Virus record (IMG/VR): IMGVR_UViG_3300037087_000760
Coordinates: 124,001-188,000 of that record
Reading direction: 5' to 3' (one strand)
Length of the DNA stretch: 64,000 nt
Part shown: positions 5,576 to 45,990 of the stretch, in pieces
Layout: each line of letters starts with the position of its first letter
How positions within the stretch are numbered: position 1 is the stretch's first letter
The notes under the pieces: generated by a model
What the model was told of the DNA's origin: nothing
What the model saw: only the letters and a program-made list of their open reading frames with translations
The model's database searches: none
Position numbers and translations under genes: made by a program

Positions 5576-7301
5576 CGTCTAAAATACTTTTTAAAATTCT
5601 TTTTCTTAATTCATTTATATATTCTTCTTCTGTTTTATACTTATCACCATCCAAATATAAAGCACCTTCCCCATTGAGATATATAATAGCCGGTCCATGT
5701 TCATTGTGCATTTTATATTTTTTTGTATAGATAATAAAATGACCGCCCTTTTTAACTTTCATTGATAATTTGAAATCTGGTTTTTTTAAAAATTCAAAAT
5801 TTTCTTTTATAAATTTTTTCCATTCACCATGTTCATCATCATTTATTTCAATAACGACATATTCAATATCATTCTCTATTTCAATACTGTAAGGTTTCAT
5901 CCAATCTTATCTTTCTTAGCTCATTTTTAAATTCTTCTTCTTCACTATATTGTTCACCATTTAGATAGAAACTATTAAGAGTTTGCTCCCAAGTAAGAAT
6001 ATGACTTCTATTTCCAGTATTACTGGTATGATGAATTTTAATTTTCATGAGGGCTCTACCATATTCATTATGAATCTTTCCATCTTTGAATACCATTTCC
6101 TTAATGAGTTTATCATTCTCGAATTTCCTAATAATCGTATATTGATGCGATTTTGTATACTCAATTAATGATGAACCTTTAATTTCTTGATCATAAACTT
6201 CAATTACATGGTATTCTATATCATTATATATTTCTTTGTATTCTTTCATTATGATAAAATATCTTTTAATTTTTTATCCCTATCGTAATTAGTAAATTCT
6301 TCTTCACTTAAAGCATTTCCTTCGATATGATATAATCCACCTTTTATTCCTTCATATTCACCATGAATAGATTGTCCATATTCATTATGGTATTTTCCAT
6401 CCTTACCATAAGCAACAAAGTTATTTTTATTTTGTTTAAAAAATACATTCTTTCCAATCAATTTAACATACTTGTGTTTTTTAATAAATTCATCAAAAAA
6501 AGTTGGATTATCATCGAGATCTGTTTGTTCAAACTCGACTACATTATATTCGATTCCATTTTCTATTTCAATATATTCTTTCATATTAATATTTCATCAA
6601 GTCTGATTTTTCTTATTTCGTTTTTATATTCTTCTGTTTTTAGTTCCCTGTTATGATCCTTAAAAATTCCAAAGTAATAATATCTTTCACCATTCAACCA
6701 CCAAGCTTTATAGAAATATTCTATAACAGCTGGCCCACATTCATTATGTCTTTTCCCGTCCTTAAAAATTTCTATTCGGTGAAGTTTATCATCTTTATCA
6801 AGTTTTCTGACGATACAATTCATAAATCTCCTATGATGTAATAAGGGTTTTACTACCTTTTCAACAAAATCATAAATATACAATTCATTCTTCCTAAGTT
6901 CAAAGACACTATATTCAATTCCATTATATGTCTCTTTGTATTCTTTCATTTAATGTCTCTTTCAATATTTTACTTCTCTTGTAATTTATTACATATTCCG
7001 TCCAGTTATTACCAGTATATTTTATTTTCTTACCATCTAAATAGTATTCTCTGATCACATCAGATACGAGAATTCTTTCAATCGCTGGTTCGAATTCGTT
7101 ATGAAATTTACCATCTTTGAAATACATGGTTTCATTAATCTTAGCTCCATCTGTCCTTGTAAATGTTGTCTTTACTTTTGAATATTCCTTATCTTTTACA
7201 AAAATTCTCCATTCTCTTTTCATTTGAGTATGAGAGAGTTTTTTATTATCCAAAATTAAAACTTCATATCTAATATCATTATATATTTCCTTAGATTTCA
7301 T
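5559..7301 (-). repeat. Tandem array of five paralogous small ORFs (5559-5900, 5881-6249, 6249-6584, 6581-6949, 6924-7301)
   Basis: All share MKxYxEIxNxIxYxV, KDGKxHNExGxA, YLxG and a C-terminal RKxxLxxxL helix. Confidence 0.85.
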
Positions 7302-8626
7302 ATATCTTCTTCAGCTGGTAAATCATCTTGAATAACAATCTGTTTAGGTGAACCTGCTATAATACCACATTCCTTTCCTATGGAAAGAATTAATGTTTTC
7401 TTTAATTTAGACACATCCAAATTATCAGTAAAACCATCAGTAAGAATTACGGTATTCAATTGATTGATTTGACTACATCCTACTATAAAATCAATAGCTG
7501 GTTGGAGTGTTGTTCCACCACCACCTACTAATTGTATCTTCTTAAATTCCCTTTTATTGTTAATAACGGTATAATCTCTTTTCCCCTGTCTTTTTACCTC
7601 TACATCACATTGAATCAGATTAATTTTAATTTTATTTTGAAAAATATAAGACAATACTCTTTGAAAATAACCACCCATTGAACCAGACACATCAAGTATA
7701 ACATTTAATCCAAATCCGATTTTGAATCTACCTTTGATTCCTTCTATTGATCGTCTGTTTCTTTTCGAAATACTTTTTTCTTTATTATATCCTCTTATAG
7801 ATGATATAGCTGTTTTAATATCTCTCAGGTAATCTTTTCTTGATTTCTGTAATTTTTCCAAGGTTATTTTTATGTTAGCCTTTTCCAAACCACGACTTCT
7901 GAGATATCTTTGAACTCTACCAACTACTTCTTTTTTAAAATCATCAGATAGATCACAAGGTAAATGATTATCTAACCAATTTTTAATACCATCATCCATT
8001 CCATCAAAGACCTTCTTCAAATAATCACTTACTGGACAATCCCCAGATTTTCCTTCCTTCCCACTACCTTGTCCTTGACAACTTCCACCTTTTTTCCATT
8101 CATTATATTTTCTCTTTTCCTGTTTTAACCATTCATAAAGATCCTCGAATACATGCTGACCCTTATATTCCTTTGGCATCATAAGAACCCAAACATCATC
8201 AATTGTTTTATCTAAATAGCTAACCTTTTCCGTAGGAAGTTCGAGAAAATCTTTTGATGGTTTTGTAGTATCAATTAAATCGGAATAAATGGCTTGATTT
8301 ATACACATATCCTGAGCTATATTACTCATTTCATGATTGTATCCACCTCTACGGGTTCTTTTTGGATGATCAAACAATAAATGGAAAATTTCGTGAATGA
8401 CAATGAAATTAATGTGCTTCTGAGGGGTAGAGTTGACGAATTCTCTATTCCAATAACACACCATTCCATGAGTGTTCACAGTAACACCAATTCTTTCAAC
8501 ATGCTTTGATTCCTCGAAATTTATAAATTGACAAAATTCACCATAGTAATAGAGCAATAATACCATATCACTCATCATTTCGTCAATACACTTAACTATT
8601 TTCGGATGTAGATTACTTCTATTCAT
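7298..8626 (-). CDS. DUF2201-type metallopeptidase + VWA domain protein
   Basis: HEIFH (HExxH), NIAQDMCIN, MIDAS DVSGSMG, GGGGT, VILTDG. Confidence 0.85.
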   Translation of the reverse strand: MNRSNLHPKIVKCIDEMMSDMVLLLYYYGEFCQFINFEESKHVERIGVTVNTHGMVCYWNREFVNSTPQKHINFIVIHEIFHLLFDHPKRTRRGGYNHEMSNIAQDMCINQAIYSDLIDTTKPSKDFLELPTEKVSYLDKTIDDVWVLMMPKEYKGQHVFEDLYEWLKQEKRKYNEWKKGGSCQGQGSGKEGKSGDCPVSDYLKKVFDGMDDGIKNWLDNHLPCDLSDDFKKEVVGRVQRYLRSRGLEKANIKITLEKLQKSRKDYLRDIKTAISSIRGYNKEKSISKRNRRSIEGIKGRFKIGFGLNVILDVSGSMGGYFQRVLSYIFQNKIKINLIQCDVEVKRQGKRDYTVINNKREFKKIQLVGGGGTTLQPAIDFIVGCSQINQLNTVILTDGFTDNLDVSKLKKTLILSIGKECGIIAGSPKQIVIQDDLPAEEDI

Positions 8627-9253
8627 ATAAACTAATATAAGTAAAAATAATCAAACTAAAAAATTATTCTGGAAGAAATTTTATTATAAATATCCAATGA
8701 TATACCTTTATCAATGTGTACTTTTATTTTCATTTCTTCTCTCATGGATTTCTTAGGAGATTTAAAGGTTTTATCAAAATCTTCTGGATTTCTTTTCCCT
8801 ATTTTTTTATTTAAATCTTTAAGTCTTTCGATTTCAAATTTATTAATAGTTCTTATCCTATTAGAGTATAAAGTTTTCAATGAATCTAATGCTTCTTCTT
8901 TATTACCAAATATCCATTGAAGAACATCCAAATTCTTTACCTCGACATCTGTTGATTTAACCTTGTAAAGAATTAATACACCTGTTCTGTTTATTGAATA
9001 TTTCCTTCCTCTTATAGTAAAATTAATAAAATCCCCATTCTTGGTAATATCCTTAACTTGATTTTCACCAATCATTTGTTTTATATAATCAATAAGGTTT
9101 GGTAAGGATTGATCTTTGGAAAAAACAATTCCGAGTTGTTGGTTAACAACCGAGTCGTAATAATGTTCTAAAATAGGAAAGCTATAATCATAGAAGTCCA
9201 ACAAGAATTCCATTCCATTTGATATATTTTTAGGTATATATTAAAAATAAAAA

Positions 9254-9487
9254 AACAAAAACTGTTATCTCATAGCCGCGATTCTGTTTCTACTCTTACA
9301 TTTGTCTAATGCCTTTCGACATTCCCCGAAGGGTGCCCCAACCCGACCTCATAGGAAAACCGACATCCTCAGTCTGTTTGGGTTGCTACTTCCGCGGTTC
9401 AAACGACCTTACGGTCTCCCTCGTTAGGTTTTGTAGTCGCGAACTTCCTCTGGTTTCCCAGCGTAAGATCGAACAACAGTTTTTGTT
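9254..9487 (-). ncRNA. rnpB: RNase P RNA, minimal type with reduced specificity domain
   Basis: 13-bp P1 (9254-9266/9475-9487); GAGGAAGUUCGCGAC and ACAGAAUCGCGGCU form P4; P2 UCUUAC/GUAAGA; P5 CUAC/GUAG; P15; P18 with GAAA loop. Confidence 0.9.
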
Positions 9488-9565
9488 CTAAGTTACAAAG
9501 TTACAAAAGTACAAATTATAATCTTACCAAAAAAATCAATTGTCTTTTTAATATATATTAGTACT

Positions 9566-10923
9566 ATGATTACCAGTTTTAAAATATTCGAAAGTTCATT
9601 CAAACAATTATCTATTCCAGTAGTTAATAGATATGTTTATCATTCTTCTAATCCAATATTTAGGAAATCAATATTAGAAAAAGGTTTGATACCAAAAAAA
9701 GGGGACAAAGAATTGGAGAAGATCATTATGGTAAAGCTATATTTGTCACTAATTCAGATAAGAAAAAAGATTGGTTTGATTCGACCTATGATGACGATGT
9801 TTATAAGATTGATACAACAAAGACAAATAATTTATGGTATAAGGATCTAAATATGTATTCAAAAAGCATAGGATCTGATATTTATATTTTAACATTTGAA
9901 CCTATTCCTCCAGAATCCATAGAATTAATTTATAAGGGGAGTGGAAATGATAAACTAAAAAGAAATTGGAGAAAAAATAGAATTGTTGAAGAATTAGATT
10001 TAAAATCAAATCCATTAATATTTTGGCACGGAACAGCTAGTCAAGATTTAAGAGGAGGACTTAGTGGTTTACACTTAGGTACTTATGAAGCAGCCAAGAT
10101 AGCATTAGAAGCAACAATAGGGATTCCAGTAAAAGGAGAATGGGATGGGAAAAGAGAATATGGGAAAACAAAACTATCTGGTAAAAAAAGATTAAGAACA
10201 GGAGAAAAAGGTAAATATCGTATTTCTGGATATAATTGTGACATACCAGATGATGATTTTTTTCCAGTAGATAATCCATATAAAGCAAAATATTCAAATG
10301 GAGAAGAAATTTCTTTGAAATGTAAACCAATTATTTTTCCTTGTAAAATTGTTGGACCAATGACAAACACGATTCACAATCCACATTCTGATGATATGGC
10401 CAATTCAATGATGAAAGGACAATTAAAAAAAGGGAATGCTAAAAAAGGTTATTATTATATAAATGATGTGGAAGATTCAGGATCGATTTCAGTAGTAGTT
10501 CCAAATTATAAACATATAGAAATTATGAAAAATGTATCGGAAAATGTTACACCAAAAACGAGGATTGAAGATGAAATAGATCGTCTGATGGATAAGGGGT
10601 ATAAAAATCTTACTCCAGATGAACAGGATTTTTTAAAAAATCCATATAAATCAACTGAAGAACCAAAAGAAGAACCAAAAAAAGAAATTTTGAAATATTA
10701 TAGTATAGCTGAAGATTTCTTTCGTAGAGTCTTATCAACAGATGTCAGGAACTATGAATTAAATGATAATCTTGATATTTTTGATATTGTAAAAGATGAT
10801 AATGAAGCTTTTGATGTTGCCAATACAATCTATTATAAATATGGTATTCAAATAGATCCTGAAAACAACGATGAATTTAAATTAGTTAATATATTCAAGA
10901 AAATTAATAGTAAAATCAAATAA
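9566..10923 (+). CDS. Multi-domain ART-fold protein split by a -1 frameshift at A7 (9694-9700)
   Basis: YHSS...SILEKGLIP in frame 0 continues in the -1 frame (open 9700-9853) into TFEPIPPE; second WHGT domain; C-terminal ACP-like helices. Confidence 0.55.
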
Positions 10924-11395: not shown

Positions 11396-12616
11396 ATGGA
11401 TAAGTATAGTTTCCTTGACCAAGACCAATACAAGTTTACGATGATGCAGGCCGTCATTCGACTTTTTCCAAATTTAATAGTCAGATACAAATTCATTAAT
11501 CGTGGAAAGACAGTTTGGCCAGAGGGAATGGCTCAAAAACTCAGAGAACGATTGAAACGATTTTCCGAGGAAGCAATTCTTACAAAAGAAGAATTGGAAT
11601 ATCTTTCTGGAATCCGTTTTTTCCTTCCATTCTTCCTTTGGGTTCTTTCAAAATATCGTTTCGATGTAAGTGAAGTTCATGTTACCGATAATATTGACGA
11701 TACCTATGTTGAGGGATACTGGTGGAGAACAATCCTTTGGGAATGTATATTTTTATCAATGTTATCTGAGTTATATCACGAGATGACAGGTCATAAACTT
11801 CCCGAAAGAAGTATCCTTACCAAACTTAATATGAGTAAAGGGTGGGATTTTTATAAAAACGACATCAATTTCGTTGAAGCTGGTTTCCGCCGTAGGTTTT
11901 CTTTCGATAACCAAGATTATGTTATCAATGATTTGATTAAATCCTCAAAAAGTTGTCTTATCGGTACAAGTAATGTATATTTCGCTAAAAAATACAATCT
12001 GATACCAATCGGGACTGTCGCTCACGAATGGTACATGGCTCATTCAGCTATGTTCGGATATCATGAAGCAAACCGTAAATCATTAGAAGATTGGATCAGG
12101 GTTTACAATGGAGATTTGGGTACGGTATTACCCGACACTTTCACATCAAAGGCATTTTTCAACATTTTCGATACACACTTCGCTAAATTGTTTGATGGGT
12201 TCAGACAAGATAGTGGTGATCCCTTTATCATCGGTCATTTGGGTCTTGATAATTATTACAGGACAATTCATGATAAACATATAATTCAGTCAAAGTCAGT
12301 TATTTTTAGTAACGCCTTGGATAATCTCAAATCAATCCTTGAAATCAGTGATGAATTCAAAAAAGAACTTATTACCCGTTTCATGATTGGAACTTGGTTA
12401 ACTTGTGATATTCCTATCATTTCGGATGAATCGAAGTCTGTTGATTTTTCTACTATGGAAAAAATAAAACCATTAAACATTGTCATGAAATTATCTCATG
12501 TGTTTATTGATGGTGTATGGATTCCTGTTGTTAAATTGGGAGATGGTAGTGGGGAGAAATATACAGGTGATCCCAATCAGATTGATTTAGCAAAAAGAAT
12601 TTTAAATATTAAGTAA
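11396..12616 (+). CDS. pncB: Nicotinate phosphoribosyltransferase
   Basis: LDQDQYKFTMMQAV, EAGFRRRFS, GTSNV, GTVAHEW, PDTF, RQDSGDP, VKLGD. Confidence 0.93.
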   Translation: MDKYSFLDQDQYKFTMMQAVIRLFPNLIVRYKFINRGKTVWPEGMAQKLRERLKRFSEEAILTKEELEYLSGIRFFLPFFLWVLSKYRFDVSEVHVTDNIDDTYVEGYWWRTILWECIFLSMLSELYHEMTGHKLPERSILTKLNMSKGWDFYKNDINFVEAGFRRRFSFDNQDYVINDLIKSSKSCLIGTSNVYFAKKYNLIPIGTVAHEWYMAHSAMFGYHEANRKSLEDWIRVYNGDLGTVLPDTFTSKAFFNIFDTHFAKLFDGFRQDSGDPFIIGHLGLDNYYRTIHDKHIIQSKSVIFSNALDNLKSILEISDEFKKELITRFMIGTWLTCDIPIISDESKSVDFSTMEKIKPLNIVMKLSHVFIDGVWIPVVKLGDGSGEKYTGDPNQIDLAKRILNIK

Positions 12617-30408: not shown

Positions 30409-30492
30409 GGCTGGGTGGCGGAACTGGTAGACGCGCGGGACTTAAAATCCCGTTCCTGTATGGGAGTGTGGGTTCAATTCCCATCCCGGCTA
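30409..30492 (+). tRNA. tRNA-Leu(TAA), long variable arm
   Basis: Full cloverleaf, loop CT-TAA-AA. Confidence 0.93.
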
Positions 30493-30493
30493 C

Positions 30494-30604
30494 AATCTCT
30501 GACATGGCACCCACTCTAAGGGACCAATACGAAAAGTTTGGGAGCTATCTGGAACAAGGCCGGAAGGCAGAAGGGATGGTAGTGGGGAGCCTAAATCAGA
30601 GATT
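30494..30604 (+). ncRNA. Structured ~111-nt RNA with SRP helix-8-like GCC-GGAA-GGC hairpin
   Basis: 9-bp terminal stem AATCTCTGA/TCAGAGATT; CCCACT/AGTGGG; GCTATC/GATGGT; CAAG-GCC-GGAA-GGC-AGAA. Confidence 0.4.
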
Positions 30605-30669
30605 TTTTAAATATTTTTATCAAATAATTTTTTTTATTCAGAAATTTGACATAATTTTGTAGTCCCTTG

Positions 30670-31072
30670 TTTGATAAAGAGTGTGAGTCAAAGGAAACAA
30701 TAAAGATTTTTAAGTCTTGAGTTCCGGCTGTAAAGGTAGCATACTCTTGTTCTTTGATTTAATGATGAAAAAGTTAGTTCTCGAAGATTAACGGCACCAG
30801 AAAGGTGTACGACACTCGTTGAGAGTGTACGATACTAAGAGGTGTATCAGAATCTTTGAAACGGGTATAAACCCGTTTGGGGAGGCGAGCAGCCGAACCA
30901 AATACAAACTCATATAACTCCGGCCCGCAAGTCGGATGAAAATTGAGTATTCAGTTTTGCGGAACTGTTGGGATAGCTAACATAAATTTATTTGTTGTGG
31001 TGATAAGTCCAAATCGATATGATTTAGTTCAGGAAGTATCGGACTAATTTGGTGAAAAACAAACACAACAAC
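30670..31072 (+). ncRNA. Candidate large ornate ncRNA
   Basis: No ORF of 60 aa or more, GC-elevated, dense hairpins (AAACGGGT/ACCCGTTT, ACACTC/GAGTGT, TGTTGTG/CACAACA), crossing helices at the 5' end. Confidence 0.5.
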
Positions 31073-31074
31073 AC

Positions 31075-31136
31075 GGACAGGTAGCTTAAGAGAGAGCCGT
31101 ATCAACGAGACGGTGGTTTAAACCCACCTCTGTCCA
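31075..31136 (+). ncRNA. 62-nt tRNA-like element lacking a normal anticodon arm
   Basis: Acceptor GGACAGG/TCTGTCC+A, D stem GCT/AGC, T arm GGTGG-TTTAAAC-CCACC; only 14 nt between D and T arms. Confidence 0.6.
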
Positions 31137-31309
31137 CAATATAAAGGGTGCAAAACTTGTTTTAACAATGTTTTTCGGGACGGTTTAGTTAAATCGGTTA
31201 TTCTTAACCAGCCCTTCTTAGAAAATTAGAAGAATCTGATACCCGATGGTGTATAGGATACCCGAAGTACAAGGGATGATCGGTGGCAACACAATCAACT
31301 TCTTTTAAC

Positions 31310-31441
31310 GAGTGTATTAGTGTAACGAAAGCACAGGCTGTTTGATGTTAGAGTAAGTTTTAGACGGCGGTCTTGGTCATTAGATTGACAAAACTGAAAT
31401 ATCGTAGGTCGGATGAGGGTTCAAATCCCTCATACATTCCA
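31310..31441 (+). ncRNA. ~130-nt tRNA-like element with expanded anticodon and variable regions
   Basis: GAGTGTAT/ATACATTC acceptor, D stem GTG/CAC, T arm GAGGG-TTCAAAT-CCCTC, GCTGTTT/AGACGGC stem closing an oversized loop. Confidence 0.55.
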
Positions 31442-31713
31442 AAAGGTGATGTGATGGAATAGTTTTTTCCATCCTGTTTTAAGGAGAGAACATTTGAGGA
31501 TAAAGCGAGCCTACATCACAAACAGGATCACCAAATAAGGTGAGGGAAACAAAGTAGAGTACCTTTTCTTCGGATTGAGGCCTTCGGGCCGAGGGAAATG
31601 ACCTGTTCTCCCTCAACTTTTTTAAAAAACGAAATTAAATTAAACTTTTTGAAAAAAAAGTTCTAAAATAGAAAAAAGAGACTTTATAAGTTAAATATAT
31701 AATAAAAAAACAT

Positions 31714-31784
31714 ATCCAGTAGGAACGTAAGTTCCGTTTTGGGACGCTCAGCGACCCAGAGGGGAAAACTCCCCGCAACTGGAT
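31714..31784 (+). promoter_or_regulatory. Four-way-junction RNA at the 5' end of the rplL-tRNA transcript
   Basis: ATCCAGT/ACTGGAT enclosing GGAAC-GTAA-GTTCC, TGGG..CCCA and GGGG..CCCC hairpins. Confidence 0.5.
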
Positions 31785-31888
31785 AAACTTTTTGAAATGA
31801 TTATGACACAGAACATCCAAAATATGATTATTAATCAGATACCCGGTAAAAATACCGATTGGATGAACTTTGTCTATAACGAATATAG

Positions 31889-31921
31889 AAAAAACCCAAT
31901 CGGAAACGATTGGGTTTTTTT
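31889..31921 (+). terminator. Intrinsic terminator of the attenuator
   Basis: ACCCAATCG-GAAA-CGATTGGGT followed by a T-run. Confidence 0.9.
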
Positions 31922-31952
31922 GTTTTATATGTCCACCATAGTTTTTAACTGG

Positions 31953-31965
31953 TGTTCTTTGAAAT
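31953..31965 (+). promoter_or_regulatory. boxA-like antitermination site
   Basis: TGTTCTTTGAAAT; copies at 32414-32426 (+) and 45905-45917 (-). Confidence 0.6.
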
Positions 31966-32044
31966 AATGATAAATCATATTCGGATTATAAGTTCAAAAC
32001 TGATAATCTGAACATAAAATGTAAATAAAAATAAATTAGAAACT

Positions 32045-32422
32045 ATGGAAGATTTAAAAAAATTAGCGGATGATCTGAGTAATCTCACCGTATTAGAGTG
32101 TTACCAGTTAGCTAAGATAATGAAAGAAGAATACGGAATAGAATCAAATACAAAAATTGTTGGTGTGAATGTATCACCAGTTCCAACTAAGGTAGTTGAA
32201 ATTGAAAAAACAAGTTTTGATGTGATTCTAAAATCAGCAGGAACAACCAACAAACTTGGTGTTATCAAATCCATCAAAGAAATGACAGGACAAAGTTTAT
32301 TGGAAATTAAGAATCTCGTTGATAATGCACCAGCGAAACTAAAAGAAAATGTAAGTAAAGATGAAGCTATGTCTTTACTGAATATTCTGAAAGAATTAGG
32401 TGCAGAAATTGAAGTTCTTTGA
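32045..32422 (+). CDS. rplL: Ribosomal protein bL12 (L7/L12)
   Basis: LSNLTVLE, EKTSFDVILK, KLGVIKSIKEMTG, LVDNAP, LKELGAEIEV. Confidence 0.93.
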   Translation: MEDLKKLADDLSNLTVLECYQLAKIMKEEYGIESNTKIVGVNVSPVPTKVVEIEKTSFDVILKSAGTTNKLGVIKSIKEMTGQSLLEIKNLVDNAPAKLKENVSKDEAMSLLNILKELGAEIEVL

Positions 32423-32449
32423 AAATAATAAAAAATGTAGTAGCGAGTT

Positions 32450-32546
32450 TGAGTGTTACTTCGTAGCTCAACAGTCGAGCATCAATCAGTTAAATTGAAA
32501 GTTGTGGGTGCGATTCCCACCGAACCCGAAAGGGTAATATCACTCA
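32450..32546 (+). ncRNA. tRNA-Asn(GTT)-like RNA with a hairpin inserted in the acceptor stem
   Basis: D arm GCTC/GAGC, loop CA-GTT-AA, T arm GTGGG/CCCAC; acceptor TTCG/CGAA interrupted by CCC-GAAA-GGG then TGAGTG/CACTCA. Confidence 0.65.
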
Positions 32547-32571
32547 ATGATTATCTCTACATTTTTTTAAT

Positions 32572-32649
32572 GGGTGTGTAGCTCAGTAGCGTTAGAGCGC
32601 GACACTGATAATGTCGAGGTCGTAGGTTCAAGTCCTACCATACCCACCA
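32572..32649 (+). tRNA. tRNA-Ile(GAT)
   Basis: Canonical cloverleaf with encoded CCA. Confidence 0.96.
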
Positions 32650-32659
32650 AAAATAACAC

Positions 32660-32741
32660 TGTGTCGTACGCAGCCGATCCTGATAAGATCGAGAACTTGT
32701 AACTGGTGTTGAAAATGTGGGTTCGAATCCCACCGGCACAA
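32660..32741 (+). tRNA. D-armless tRNA-Ile(GAT) with 25-nt variable region
   Basis: TGTGTCG/CGGCACA+A; CGATC-CTGATAA-GATCG; canonical T arm; only 8 nt between acceptor and anticodon stems. Confidence 0.65.
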
Positions 32742-32750
32742 CAAAAATTT

Positions 32751-32822
32751 GGGTTGGTAGTACTAATGAAAAACGGCGGCCTGTTAAGCCGCGAGATGTG
32801 GGTTCAAGTCCCACCCGGCCCT
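32751..32822 (+). tRNA. tRNA-Asn(GTT), weak D arm, U73
   Basis: GCGGC-CTGTTAA-GCCGC; T arm GTGGG-TTCAAGT-CCCAC. Confidence 0.8.
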
Positions 32823-32831
32823 CAATATTAT

Positions 32832-32905
32832 TCCTCAGTAGCTCAGCTGGTTAGAGCATTTGACTGTTAATCAAAGGGTCACAGGTCCAAATCCTGTCTG
32901 GGGAG
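32832..32905 (+). tRNA. tRNA-Asn(GTT)
   Basis: Canonical TCCTCAG/CTGGGGA+G; T loop variant TCCAAAT. Confidence 0.93.
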
Positions 32906-32910
32906 CAAAA

Positions 32911-32987
32911 TTCGGAATGTTTGTCTGTGATTGGGTGCACCACACAGATAATAAAGGAAAAATGTGGTTCAATTCCACCATTCCGAG
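32911..32987 (+). ncRNA. tRNA-like element with acceptor and T arm but a single long hairpin replacing D and anticodon arms
   Basis: TCGGAATG/CATTCCGA; TTGTCTGTG/CACAGATAA; GTGG-TTCAATT-CCAC. Confidence 0.55.
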
Positions 32988-32995
32988 CAAAAATA

Positions 32996-33087
32996 GGGAG
33001 TGTAGCTGATTTGGTTTAGCGGCAGACCGTTAATCTGTGACTGAAAATATTGAAATAAAGTTGGTTCGACCCCATCCTCTCCCGCCA
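32996..33087 (+). tRNA. tRNA-Asn(GTT) with 21-nt AT-rich variable region
   Basis: GCAGA-CCGTTAA-TCTGT; G73 plus CCA encoded; C33. Confidence 0.7.
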
Positions 33088-33095
33088 GTACATAT

Positions 33096-33175
33096 TGTGG
33101 TGTATCCCCCATGTCTTATAAACATGCATTAAAAGGGTAATAGCGTGTATGTGGGTTCGAGTCCCACCACCACAA
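33096..33175 (+). tRNA. D-armless tRNA-Ile(TAT) with 24-nt variable region
   Basis: TGTGGTG/CACCACA+A; CATGT-CTTATAA-ACATG; canonical T arm. Confidence 0.65.
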
Positions 33176-33180
33176 CAAAT

Positions 33181-33252
33181 GGTCGGGTAAGCTAACGGTT
33201 AAACTGGATGTCTTATACACATCTTTTAAGAGTTCGAATCTCTTCCTGACTA
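33181..33252 (+). tRNA. tRNA-Ile(TAT)
   Basis: GATGT-CTTATAC-ACATC; full cloverleaf. Confidence 0.85.
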
Positions 33253-33257
33253 CAAAT

Positions 33258-33333
33258 GGCGAGATAGCTCAGACGGTTTTAGAGCGTCGGATTCATAACC
33301 CGGAGGTCGAGGGTTCAACTCCCTCTCTCGCTA
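33258..33333 (+). tRNA. tRNA-Met(CAT), elongator type
   Basis: Canonical cloverleaf, loop TT-CAT-AA. Confidence 0.93.
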
Positions 33334-33341
33334 CCCAAAAT

Positions 33342-33413
33342 AGTCCTATGGCGTAACGCGAAGCGTGACTCCCCTTGAAGGAGATGGTACTGGTTCGAAT
33401 CCAGTTAGGACTG
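33342..33413 (+). tRNA. tRNA-Gln(TTG), C33 variant
   Basis: AGTCCTA/TAGGACT+G; loop CC-TTG-AA. Confidence 0.8.
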
Positions 33414-33418
33414 CAAAT

Positions 33419-33504
33419 ATCAATGTGAACGGAATGGTTATCGTAGAGGTCTCATAAGCCTTTCAACTCGTTGAGTTGTGGTGGTTCGAATCCACTCATT
33501 GATA
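33419..33504 (+). tRNA. tRNA(CAT), Met or Ile2, with long variable arm
   Basis: GAGGT-CTCATAA-GCCTT; variable hairpin TCAAC/GTTGA. Confidence 0.75.
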
Positions 33505-33510
33505 CAAAAT

Positions 33511-33581
33511 AGTCCTGTGGTGTAACGGTAGCATGCGAGCCTTTGAAGCTTTGGGTACAGATTCGAATTCTGTCAGGACTG
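33511..33581 (+). tRNA. tRNA-Gln(TTG)
   Basis: AGTCCTG/CAGGACT+G; loop CT-TTG-AA. Confidence 0.88.
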
Positions 33582-33587
33582 CAAAAT

Positions 33588-33660
33588 TGTTCTGTCGTAT
33601 AATTGGCAGTACAGCACCCTCTGAAGGTGTATGGTGTAGGTTCGAGTCCTACTGGAACAG
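33588..33660 (+). tRNA. tRNA-Gln(CTG)
   Basis: GCACC-CTCTGAA-GGTGT; G73. Confidence 0.88.
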
Positions 33661-33665
33661 CAAAT

Positions 33666-33737
33666 GGTTCTGTGGTGTAATGCGTAGCACGAGTGATTCT
33701 GAATCACTTGGTTAAGGTTCGAATCCTTACAGAACTA
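33666..33737 (+). tRNA. tRNA-Gln(CTG), A73
   Basis: AGTGA-TTCTGAA-TCACT; full cloverleaf. Confidence 0.85.
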
Positions 33738-33738
33738 C

Positions 33739-34053
33739 ATGAAAAAGGACATAAGAAAGACATTTCGTAAAGAGGTATTCACCAGAGATAAGTATACTTG
33801 TAAAGGATGTGATCAAAAACTTGATGAATCTGAATTGGATGCACATCACATCACTGACCGCAATGAAATGCCAAATGGTGGATATGTGAAAGAGAACGGT
33901 ATAACTCTTTGTAAGAAAGATTGTCATATAAAAGCTGAAAAATTTCATATAACAGATGGAAAAGAATGGGTAGAGGGATTTCATCCAGATGACTTATACG
34001 AGAAGATTGATTCATCTAAGGGGAAGGCTGTTTTAATGTCTCAAATTATTTAG
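33739..34053 (+). CDS. HNH endonuclease
   Basis: RDKYTCKGC, LDAHHI, ENGITLC...CHIKAE. Confidence 0.85.
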   Translation: MKKDIRKTFRKEVFTRDKYTCKGCDQKLDESELDAHHITDRNEMPNGGYVKENGITLCKKDCHIKAEKFHITDGKEWVEGFHPDDLYEKIDSSKGKAVLMSQII

Positions 34054-34419
34054 AATAATGAGAAATAATTTTTTTATTGATTTAATTTTTGTATCTTTGT
34101 ATTGTATAAATTTAAATTATATGAAACAGTTTATTAAACCATCAACATTCAAAGAAAGAAAAAAAAGACCAGATAAAACGAAAGTTGATGAATTTATCGA
34201 AAAGTTCAACAAACTTATAAAAAAGGGAGAATTAGAGGCTAATGATGTACTCAATAAACTCCCATACTTAAATGAATCTGAGTTTAATCTGGCTGTTGCT
34301 ATTGCTCGTGAAAATGGTTGGCAATTAACTCAATTTGAAGATAATTACAACACGACATCTTACCAACTTACAGAAATAAAACTTTCTGTTTAAAAAACAA
34401 TATATAATCATTGTTGTAT

Positions 34420-34490
34420 TGTCCTATGGTGTAATGGCAACACGTGGGTTTTTGGAGCCTTAGTTCTAAGTTCGAATCTTAGTAGGACAA
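34420..34490 (+). tRNA. tRNA-Gln(TTG), solitary
   Basis: TGTCCTA/TAGGACA; loop TT-TTG-GA; weak anticodon stem; AATATATA box at 34399. Confidence 0.75.
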
Positions 34491-34585
34491 CTCTATCACA
34501 ATATACAAGAAGTCAACTACGATGGGAATCGAGGCCAACACGACAAGGATCAAACTTCGTTATAAAGATATTGTGGATTTTTTCT

Positions 34586-45120: not shown

Positions 45121-45169
45121 AGATTTTTATTTCTATATATAAAAATTTATGTGTAATGTTTCATAGTTG

Positions 45170-45243
45170 TAACCCCACCCGGACTTGAACCGAGATATTT
45201 AGTTTCTAAAACTAACGCCGCTAACCAATTAGGCCATGGGGTC
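45170..45243 (-). tRNA. tRNA-Leu(TAG) with short variable loop
   Basis: TTAGT-TTTAGAA-ACTAA; 4-nt variable loop; A73. Confidence 0.8.
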
Positions 45244-45253
45244 ATTATTTTAG

Positions 45254-45327
45254 TAGTTCTGTTCGGACTTGAACCGAAATATTTGGTTTTTGAAACCAAC
45301 GCCGCTAACCAATTAGGCCACAGAACC
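45254..45327 (-). tRNA. tRNA-Leu(CAA) with short variable loop
   Basis: TTGGT-TTCAAAA-ACCAA; near-copy of the neighbouring D arm; A73. Confidence 0.8.
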
Positions 45328-45332
45328 TTTTG

Positions 45333-45417
45333 TATCGATGGTGGGACTCGAACCCACACCCTCGTAATGAGGAACGGCTTCTGAGGCCGTCGCGTCTACC
45401 AATTCCGCCACACCGAC
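45333..45417 (-). tRNA. tRNA-Leu(CAG), long arm
   Basis: Canonical Leu D arm GCG-GAATTGGTAGA-CGC; CT-CAG-AA. Confidence 0.94.
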
Positions 45418-45469
45418 AAATTTCAAATATTTACCAGTTTTTTGAAAAACTGTTCAAAATTTGATTTTG

Positions 45470-45543
45470 TAGCACCTGTCGGATTCGAACCGACAAACTT
45501 GGATTTTAAGACCAATATGGTTGCTCTATTACATCAAGGTGCC
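45470..45543 (-). tRNA. tRNA-Leu(TAA) with short variable loop
   Basis: TTGGT-CTTAAAA-TCCAA; A73. Confidence 0.75.
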
Positions 45544-45548
45544 ATTTG

Positions 45549-45632
45549 TAGCCTCTGTGGGAATCGAACCCACACGGTCTTTCGACCACTGGATTTTGAG
45601 TCCAGAGCGTCTACCAATTCCGCCAAGAGGCC
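45549..45632 (-). tRNA. tRNA-Leu(CAA), long arm
   Basis: Canonical cloverleaf, CT-CAA-AA. Confidence 0.95.
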
Positions 45633-45637
45633 ATTTG

Positions 45638-45722
45638 TGGGAGTTGATGGAGTTGCACCACCCGAGCCCTGAGGACAACAGATTTACAGTCTGCCCCGCT
45701 ACTACTTACGGAATAAACTCCC
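45638..45722 (-). tRNA. tRNA-Tyr(GTA), long arm
   Basis: GCAGA-CTGTAAA-TCTGT; atypical T loop TGCAACT. Confidence 0.88.
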
Positions 45723-45726
45723 AAAG

Positions 45727-45811
45727 TGACCAAGGTGGGATTCGAACCCACACGGGCGTAAAGCCCAACGGATTTTAAGTCCGTCGCGTCTACCAGTTCC
45801 GCCACAAGGCC
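45727..45811 (-). tRNA. tRNA-Leu(TAA), long arm
   Basis: CT-TAA-AA; two T-T mismatches in acceptor stem. Confidence 0.88.
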
Positions 45812-45819
45812 AATTTCAG

Positions 45820-45901
45820 TGTCCATAGGGGGACTCGAACCCCCACGCCTTTCGACAATAGTTTCTTAGGCTATCGCGTCTACCAGTTCCGCCATACGGA
45901 C
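45820..45901 (-). tRNA. tRNA-Leu(AAG), long arm
   Basis: ATAGC-CTAAGAA-ACTAT; canonical Leu D arm. Confidence 0.88.
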
Positions 45902-45918
45902 AATTTCAAAGAACTCAG

Positions 45919-45990
45919 TGGGAATAGAAGGATTCGAACCTACAAATCACGATTTTACAGACCGCTGAGCGACCACTGCTCAATATTCCC
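45919..45990 (-). tRNA. tRNA-Tyr(GTA) with short variable loop
   Basis: GGGAATA/TATTCCC+A; CT-GTA-AA; 5-nt variable loop. Confidence 0.85.

Follow-up and report, generated by a model that had tools for sequence, protein, structure and literature searches.

The stretch of DNA analysed here (the window, 64,000 nucleotides) spans positions 124,001 to 188,000 of the IMG/VR record IMGVR_UViG_3300037087_000760, a 210,983-bp sequence of a large bacteriophage from a peat metagenome that is estimated to be 71% complete. Window positions 9254-9487 form a GC-rich island (50% GC in a record of 30.6% GC) that, read on the minus strand, encodes a 234-nt RNA with every element of a bacterial type-A RNase P catalytic domain, while only 43 nt replace the specificity domain (S-domain) of about 150-200 nt. 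The region is flanked by a nicotinate phosphoribosyltransferase gene (11396-12616, plus strand) and a DUF2201 metallopeptidase/VWA-like gene (7298-8626, minus strand), and the immediate neighbours (8656-9213, 9566-9850 and 9853-10923) have no Pfam match. A DNA run contains the same region in a 116-kb contig at 24x coverage. The features of the locus are as follows.

9254-9487, minus strand: the whole mini RNase P RNA gene (234 nt, P1 to P1').
9496-9503, minus strand: TAACTTTG, a Bacteroidota-type -7 promoter box (TAnnTTTG) about 10 nt upstream of P1, a candidate promoter of the gene (inference only).
9475-9487, minus strand: P1 5' strand, 13 bp, pairing with 9254-9266.
9463-9468, minus strand: P2 5' strand UCUUAC, pairing with GUAAGA at 9294-9299.
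9450-9461, minus strand: P3 hairpin CUGG-GAAA-CCAG.
9438-9450, minus strand: CR-I and P4 5' strand, GAGGAAGUUCGCG, with a bulged U.
9433-9436, minus strand: P5 5' strand CUAC, pairing with GUAG at 9386-9389.
9427-9432, minus strand: P6 5' strand AAAACC, forming a pseudoknot with GGUUUU at 9356-9361 in L17.
9393-9423, minus strand: mini S-domain, consisting of P7 (CGAGG/CCGCG), the 5' joiner GA, the hairpin GACC-GUAA-GGUC and a 7-nt 3' bulge GUUUGAA.
9383-9385, minus strand: J5/15 CAA (GCAA motif as in the bacterial consensus, in invariant columns).
9337-9382, minus strand: P15 (CCC at 9380-9382 with GGG at 9337-9339), the L15 internal loop (J15/16 AAACA and J16/15 GGGUU), P16 (GACU:GGUC) and P17 (AGGA:UCCU), with L17 carrying P6'.
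9324-9333, minus strand: extra hairpin CCC-UUCG-GGG between P15 and P18.
9308-9323, minus strand: P18, AAUGUC-GAAA-GGCAUU.
9299-9308, minus strand: CR-IV / J18-2, UAGACAAAUG (consensus CuAGAugAAUG).
9273-9293, minus strand: J2/4 and CR-V (ACAGAAUCGCGGCUA), including the P4 3' strand at 9274-9280.
9235-9253, minus strand: U-rich tract directly after P1, a possible transcript end (inference only).

Further hallmark strings of bacterial RNase P RNA are GCAA-CCC-AAACAG (J5/15, P15 and J15/16) and CGGGUUGGGGCA (J16/15 and P15'). The minimum-free-energy fold closes the molecule with the 13-bp P1 and has a z-score of -3.0 against shuffles. The observation made in the earlier note, namely an RNase P RNA of about 234 nt with a complete catalytic domain and an almost deleted specificity domain, is therefore confirmed: all of the elements named there are present, and no CR-II/III-like motif lies between the P5 strands. 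The note did not state the strand, and its P15 (CAACCC:GGGUUG) is rejected, since the 5' CCC varies in the relatives while the GGG of GGGUU never changes. The true partner is the triplet following GGGUU, with which the three bases after GCAA covary (CCC:GGG, CAC:GUG, GUC:GAU, UUC:GAA and so on). P15 is thus a 3-bp helix, and this leaves the internal loop AAACA / GGGUU, which equals the bacterial L15 (consensus AAAUA / GGGUa), the element that binds the tRNA 3' end. The conserved internal loop of the S-domain remnant and the large phage family described below, including phage-encoded RnpA in some members, had also escaped the note.

The curated Rfam models do not detect the window copy: no RNase P family was found in the window at gathering thresholds, in positions 9100-9650 at E<=10, or with RF00010 on the whole record. 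The absence of a significant covariance-model hit for the catalytic domain had been put forward in advance as an outcome that would count against the identification, and for the window copy that is, taken literally, what was observed. It is overridden by an RF00010 hit to a close family member and by the covariation evidence, both obtained when homology was tested in another way. By blastn the region was found in the huge-phage genomes LR756501/LR756503 (735 kb) and LR745206 (635 kb), and pattern scans of IMG/VR and JGI metagenomes with conserved strings gave many loci. From 30 distinct sequences we built a covariance model, R1 (188 positions from P1b to P1b'), which finds about 150 matches in the fetched loci (numbered below with the prefix L) from phage and metagenome contigs and scores the window copy at 176.8 bits (E 2e-40). 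The window copy is the only one in its genome. Single copies also occur in LR756501, LR745206 and LR756502, and blastn with a family member additionally matches LR756511, whereas blastn of the divergent member L275 against cultured phages found no match. Most copies lie inside or beside tRNA arrays, some next to tmRNA genes. In L076:8624-9307 (IMGVR_UViG_3300033069_001170), and also in L074 and L112, the gene appears to be split: the 5' part ends inside P16/P17 and the 3' part resumes about 300 nt later with an ORF (ATGAAAACAGTT...) in between, which may be an intron or a homing-endonuclease-type insertion in the ribozyme gene.

The secondary structure was examined in a model-based alignment of 96 matches (95 distinct rows), onto which the helices were mapped from the window row. 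The 45 core pairs are 95.7% paired and 40 of them show changes on both sides, while sliding the 3' partner by 1-3 columns gives 29-44% paired and column shuffles give 72.4% (maximum 73.4%). P4 (7 pairs) and P6 (5 pairs) were not part of the structure of the model, so their covariation is independent; both are 96.7% paired with 4 compensatory pairs each. In P2 6 of 6 pairs are compensatory and 98.8% of cells pair. RNAalifold independently predicts P2, P5, P7, P15, P16 and P17 from the same alignment, and 24 of its 26 pairs show compensatory changes. A separate count of structure pairs in the family alignment gives 97.3% paired and 25 of 30 pairs with double changes, against 35-49% in slid controls and with none of 500 shuffles reaching the observed value. 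P1 differs in sequence in nearly every relative but stays complementary. A protein-coding reading of the overlapping plus-strand ORF (9309-9491, 60 aa) was considered, but an open antisense frame is present in 27 of 95 relatives, as expected for a GC-richer island, and the compensatory and pseudoknot covariation argue for RNA.

The homology to RNase P RNA is supported by the match of RF00010 (RNaseP_bact_a) to family member L313:312-540 over model positions 1-367, at 40 bits and E 1e-9 to 3e-11 depending on search size. This member scores 183 bits on R1, next to the window's 177. The alignment assigns P1, P2, P3, CR-I, P5, P15/L15, P16-P17, the P18 region, CR-IV and CR-V exactly as above and collapses about 140 S-domain model positions onto about 40 nt. 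RF00373 hits two other members at E about 2e-4. The score of the best family member on RF00010 (40 bits) is nevertheless below the Rfam gathering threshold of 100 bits, and R1 in its turn does not hit bona fide rnpB of an Acidobacterium (L311) or of a Bacteroidota MAG (L312), simple local alignments to those genes being uninformative. L313 (also L307) derives from JAAXWV010000224.1, a 3-kb contig of a Roizmanbacteria MAG that is packed with about 12 tRNAs plus the mini RNA, which is the only RF00010 match in that MAG; it is probably a phage contig binned into a CPR genome and could mislead RNase P surveys of CPR.

The conserved regions match the bacterial consensus base for base in register, as exemplified by GGAAGUUC fitting GNAANNUC with the bulged U, by GCAA, AAACA/GGGUU and UAGAnAAAUG, and by ACAGAAnCGnGGCUA. 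In P4, GGAAGUUCGCG pairs with CGCGGCU in the register of the consensus (GGAA-GU-U-CGCG / CGCG-GC-U corresponds to GGAA-AG-U-CCGG / CCGG-CU-U), so that the bulged U is at the same place. Some members (L007, L275 and L282) carry the canonical GAGGAAAGUC. CR-IV and ACAGAA of J2/4 lie in near-invariant columns. J16/15 GGGUU is invariant while the flanking P15 covaries, and its CGGGU aligns to the RF00010 consensus CGGGUa, although binding of the tRNA 3' end was not assayed. The P6 pseudoknot between J5/7 and the P17 loop and the P15-P16-P17 arm, which distinguish type A from type B, are present and covary, and no hit to the type B model (RF00011), in which P5.1, P10.1 and P15.1 replace P6/P16/P17, was seen. 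The specificity domain P8-P14 with CR-II/CR-III is absent, and the distance between the P5 strands in the alignment has a median of 45 nt. R1 also finds relatives of 250-395 nt in phage tRNA/tmRNA arrays whose S-region is long and contains a CR-II-like GAGUGAAAGGCUC; these long forms also fail the Rfam gathering thresholds, and in four loci (L226, L216, L212 and L268) tmRNA genes (104-124 bits) lie 1-2 kb from them inside tRNA arrays. The loss of the S-domain is therefore graded within one phage lineage of RNase P RNAs.

The remnant of the S-domain is a conserved module and not debris. P7 (5 bp) and the hairpin covary, the 5' joiner is GA in 83 of 95 sequences, and the 3' joiner is exactly 7 nt in 88 of 95, with G at -7, U at -5 (84 of 88) and A at -1 (88 of 88), giving G-U-U-W-N-N-A. 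The U-N-N-N-A spacing recalls a T-loop motif, which is an inference on our part that was not put to any test here. A K-turn reading of this loop was dropped because the would-be tandem G.A position on the long strand is variable. P18 and the preceding hairpin are optional: the whole region is absent in 60 of 95 members, and where it is present 24 of 30 distinct inserts fold into two hairpins, the loop of P18 being GNRA in at least 17 of the 30.

As to the protein partner, no RnpA (PF00825 / TIGR00188) was found in the 211-kb record, which is incomplete. RnpA genes do lie in three phage records that also carry the mini RNA, namely IMGVR_UViG_3300032236_002285 (476 kb; L316:1498-1797, minus strand, 99 aa), LR745206 (635 kb; L315:1465-1812, plus strand) and a 58-kb fragment (G010) in which the two genes are about 10 kb apart; the phage RnpA loci are L316, L315 and L320. 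The first two are nearly complete huge phages; their RnpA proteins, two of the three, score above the cut-off for PF00825, also pass TIGR00188, and have an intact RNR motif (KRAVDRNRIKRL). In L316 the gene lies beside a ClpP-like ORF. A phage encoding both subunits argues strongly that the RNA is a working RNase P subunit and not a decoy.

The record has 67 tRNA genes in five arrays, two of them in the window at 30409-34491 and 45169-45990, covering most amino acids. Of these, 56 have a canonical GTTCRA T-loop, most others differ by one base, and only about 7 encode CCA, while 20 of 23 tRNAs in the window score above 47 bits on the general tRNA model. Many isoacceptors are paired as a version of about 73 nt and one of about 85 nt (for example Leu, 75 versus 85 nt, and Gln, Lys, Glu, Thr, Val and Met), a feature that we did not analyse, and two tRNAs have odd anticodon loops. 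A 129-nt tRNA match at 30.5 bits (31311-31439, plus strand), possibly an intron-containing tRNA, and a 65-nt truncated tRNA-like match (32460-32524, plus strand) were not called by ARAGORN. We see no excess of aberrant elbows. The interpretation offered in the earlier note is thus only partly supported: the homology to RNase P RNA, the complete type-A-like catalytic domain with a nearly deleted specificity domain, and the architectural parallel to archaeal type T hold, but the suggestion that the RNA is suited to phage tRNA-like RNAs with abnormal D/T elbows is not supported.

The sigma-70 promoter and intrinsic terminator scans gave nothing above chance. The TAnnTTTG motif, however, sits 18-20 nt before the core in 8 family members (among them L174, L184, L313, L033, L044, L139 and L189), and 21 of 91 upstream regions hold it against about 6 expected, which hints at a Bacteroidota host and independent transcription, whereas other members are flanked directly by tRNAs. 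R1 found nothing in 151 sampled Bacteroidota genomes, so the mini form is not their cellular RNase P RNA. The bona fide rnpB of the Bacteroidota MAG (L312:1501-1869, minus strand) shares GCAUAGAUAAAUGAUGG with the phage family and goes from P15' straight to CR-IV without P18, like 60% of the phage RNAs, which may be a clue to the donor lineage. No RNA run is recorded as containing the stretch, and no contig over the RNA was seen in three metatranscriptomes of the same study; as these are contigs only, this is uninformative and does not prove absence. The cultured Stenotrophomonas phage vB_SmaS-DLP_6 (DLP6) has an unannotated member of the family (L324:2309-2541, KU682439.2 about 105,780-106,012) of 233 nt that scores 70.2 bits on R1 (E 1.5e-16) and lies in the 30-tRNA region between a hypothetical gene and tRNA-Arg-CCG, 13 nt upstream of the latter. 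The genome paper of this phage does not mention RNase P (PMC5349666), and its copy provides an experimentally tractable member with which the question is directly testable at the bench.

We consider it very highly probable that the RNA is a genuine RNase P RNA homologue, and most likely, with good confidence, that it is the functional RNA subunit of a phage-borne, bacterial-type (type-A-derived) RNase P that uses host RnpA. In this view it would be transcribed from its own promoter or within the RNA-gene regions of the phage, would bind the host RnpA protein (some related phages supplying their own), and would cleave the 5' leaders from the at least 67 phage pre-tRNAs, the substrate being positioned mainly through catalytic-domain contacts (the J5/15 A, the L15 GGGUU loop with the 3' end, the P4 metal site, and RnpA with the leader) and not through the CR-II/III T-loop reader. 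The sequence motifs, the covarying helices, the distribution of the family and its co-occurrence with RnpA are established by our data, while the catalysis, the protein partner and the substrates are inferred. Cleavage of pre-tRNA, with or without RnpA, was not measured, and the loss of CR-II/III lowers the activity of bacterial RNase P RNAs (RPRs) in vitro. The C-domain-only RPR of E. coli is nevertheless catalytically active, needs a P6-like contact and does not need P18 (PMC5839562), and the natural family matches this, P6 being kept and covarying while P18 is frequently lost.

Among the alternatives, a ribozyme of relaxed or altered specificity, whose main job would be to cleave substrates other than ordinary pre-tRNAs (unusual tRNA-like RNAs as the earlier note proposed, pre-tmRNA, phage or host mRNAs, or hairpins recognised only through L15 and the acceptor-like stem), appears unlikely. 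It is favoured by the absence of CR-II/III, the paired tRNA versions and a few low-scoring tRNAs, the tmRNA genes next to some long-form relatives, and the cleavage of hairpin model substrates by C-domain-only RPRs (PMC5839562), but it is opposed by the prevalence of canonical T-loops, by the location in or near ordinary tRNA arrays in most relatives, and by the conservation of the S-remnant, which suggests retained rather than abandoned substrate or domain contacts. A non-catalytic decoy or regulator that captures host RnpA, or other RNase P RNA-binding factors, and so depresses host tRNA maturation is somewhat less likely still. The RnpA-contacting regions (CR-I, CR-IV, CR-V and P15) are conserved, no RnpA gene is found in this record, and a viral RNase P-like RNA has been discussed as a decoy (PMC3001073). 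However, related phages encode RnpA together with the mini RNA, which makes no sense for a decoy, elements needed for catalysis and substrate binding but not for protein binding (the register-exact bulged U in P4, the L15 GGGUU and J5/15) are conserved, and the phage itself needs 67 tRNAs processed. A decaying remnant of a captured host rnpB that lost its S-domain, in spite of the 'provirus' label of the record in IMG/VR, the failure of the window copy in Rfam and the interruption of the gene in at least one relative (L076), is very improbable and already contradicted by the covariation, since about 150 relatives keep all helices through compensatory changes, there is one copy per complete huge-phage genome, the mini form was not found in the Bacteroidota genomes sampled, and the deletion boundary is a conserved structured loop.

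RNase P RNA is treated as a cellular or organellar hallmark, and phage tRNAs are textbook substrates of the host enzyme, the only way in which a 2024 review describes them (PMC11143913). We found no report of a phage-encoded RNase P RNA or of this family, although our literature search did not extend to most subscription journals and an earlier description cannot be excluded. Lui et al. ran all Rfam models on circular megaphages and saw only tRNAs and tmRNA (PMC8172020), an outcome of Rfam-based annotation that the present finding explains. A widespread phage-encoded RNase P RNA, sometimes with a phage RnpA, would add tRNA 5' maturation to the translation functions that huge phages carry themselves. 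It would also give the RNase P field a natural, bacterial-lineage counterpart of archaeal type T, an evolutionary experiment showing which parts of the ribozyme are dispensable (P8-P14 and often P18) and which are not (P4, P6, L15 and a small conserved loop). A more far-reaching reading, which we regard as only slightly more likely than not, is that large phages (huge phages of 385-735 kb and at least one cultured T4-like phage, DLP6) carry their own RNase P with a previously unrecognised, S-domain-free class of bacterial-type RNA, in some genomes paired with a phage-encoded RnpA to form a fully viral tRNA 5'-processing enzyme, and that the conserved 2x7-nt loop would be a new minimal replacement for the CR-II/III tRNA-elbow reader or an inter-domain brace.

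Of the known systems, bacterial type A RNase P RNA (RF00010; E. coli M1 RNA, T. maritima RPR) shares with the phage RNA P1-P5, the P4 pseudoknot with the bulged U, the P6 pseudoknot, P15/L15 (GGU-type loop)-P16-P17, P18 with a GNRA loop, CR-I/IV/V in register and the partner protein RnpA, encoded by some relatives. The phage RNA differs in lacking P8-P14 and CR-II/III, in its length of 234 nt against about 350-400, in a P15 of only 3 bp, in the extra hairpin between P15 and P18, in a score far below the Rfam gathering threshold and in being encoded by a phage. Archaeal type T (PMC3579882), the nearest architectural precedent, is likewise a natural RPR of about 200 nt with an intact catalytic domain and most of the S-domain gone, the P10-like stem being capped by a small loop, and is likewise missed by the standard Rfam model. 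Here the reduced S-domain consists of P7 plus a 4-bp hairpin with a GUAA loop, which is an analogy and not membership. Type T is built on the archaeal type-A scaffold, has a 3-bp P2, a shortened P5/P15 linker and no L18, and works with Pop5/Rpp30, whereas in the phage RNA P2 is 6 bp, J5/15 is 3 nt, P18 with a GAAA loop is present, P6/P16/P17/P18 are bacterial and the inferred partner is RnpA. No type-T model hit was seen in the Rfam scans, and the reduction is convergent rather than a matter of shared ancestry.

The engineered C-domain-only bacterial RPRs (Eco CP RPR; PMC5839562) show that the catalytic domain alone is active, with dependence on a P6-like contact and a dispensable P18, but they are laboratory truncations with reduced efficiency, while the phage RNA is a naturally selected form that keeps a conserved P7/hairpin/internal-loop module. 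The reduced cellular RPRs of Mycoplasma fermentans and of some CPR bacteria lacking P12 (PMC8172020) also lose S-domain helices and fall below Rfam thresholds, yet they keep most of the S-domain and are the only RNase P RNA of the cell, whereas the phage RNA loses nearly all of it and is viral. The camelpox RNase P-like RNA (PMC3001073), the nearest viral precedent, is also virus-encoded and resembles RNase P RNA, but it is in a eukaryotic virus, is eukaryote-type, is discussed as a possible decoy with little effect on RNase P, and has no co-encoded protein subunit and no tRNA arrays. Finally, the phage theta (HDV-like) ribozymes linked to tRNAs (PMC10879173) are phage-encoded ribozymes associated with phage tRNA maturation, but they are of an unrelated fold and chemistry, being self-cleaving and acting in cis rather than as a trans-acting RNase P.
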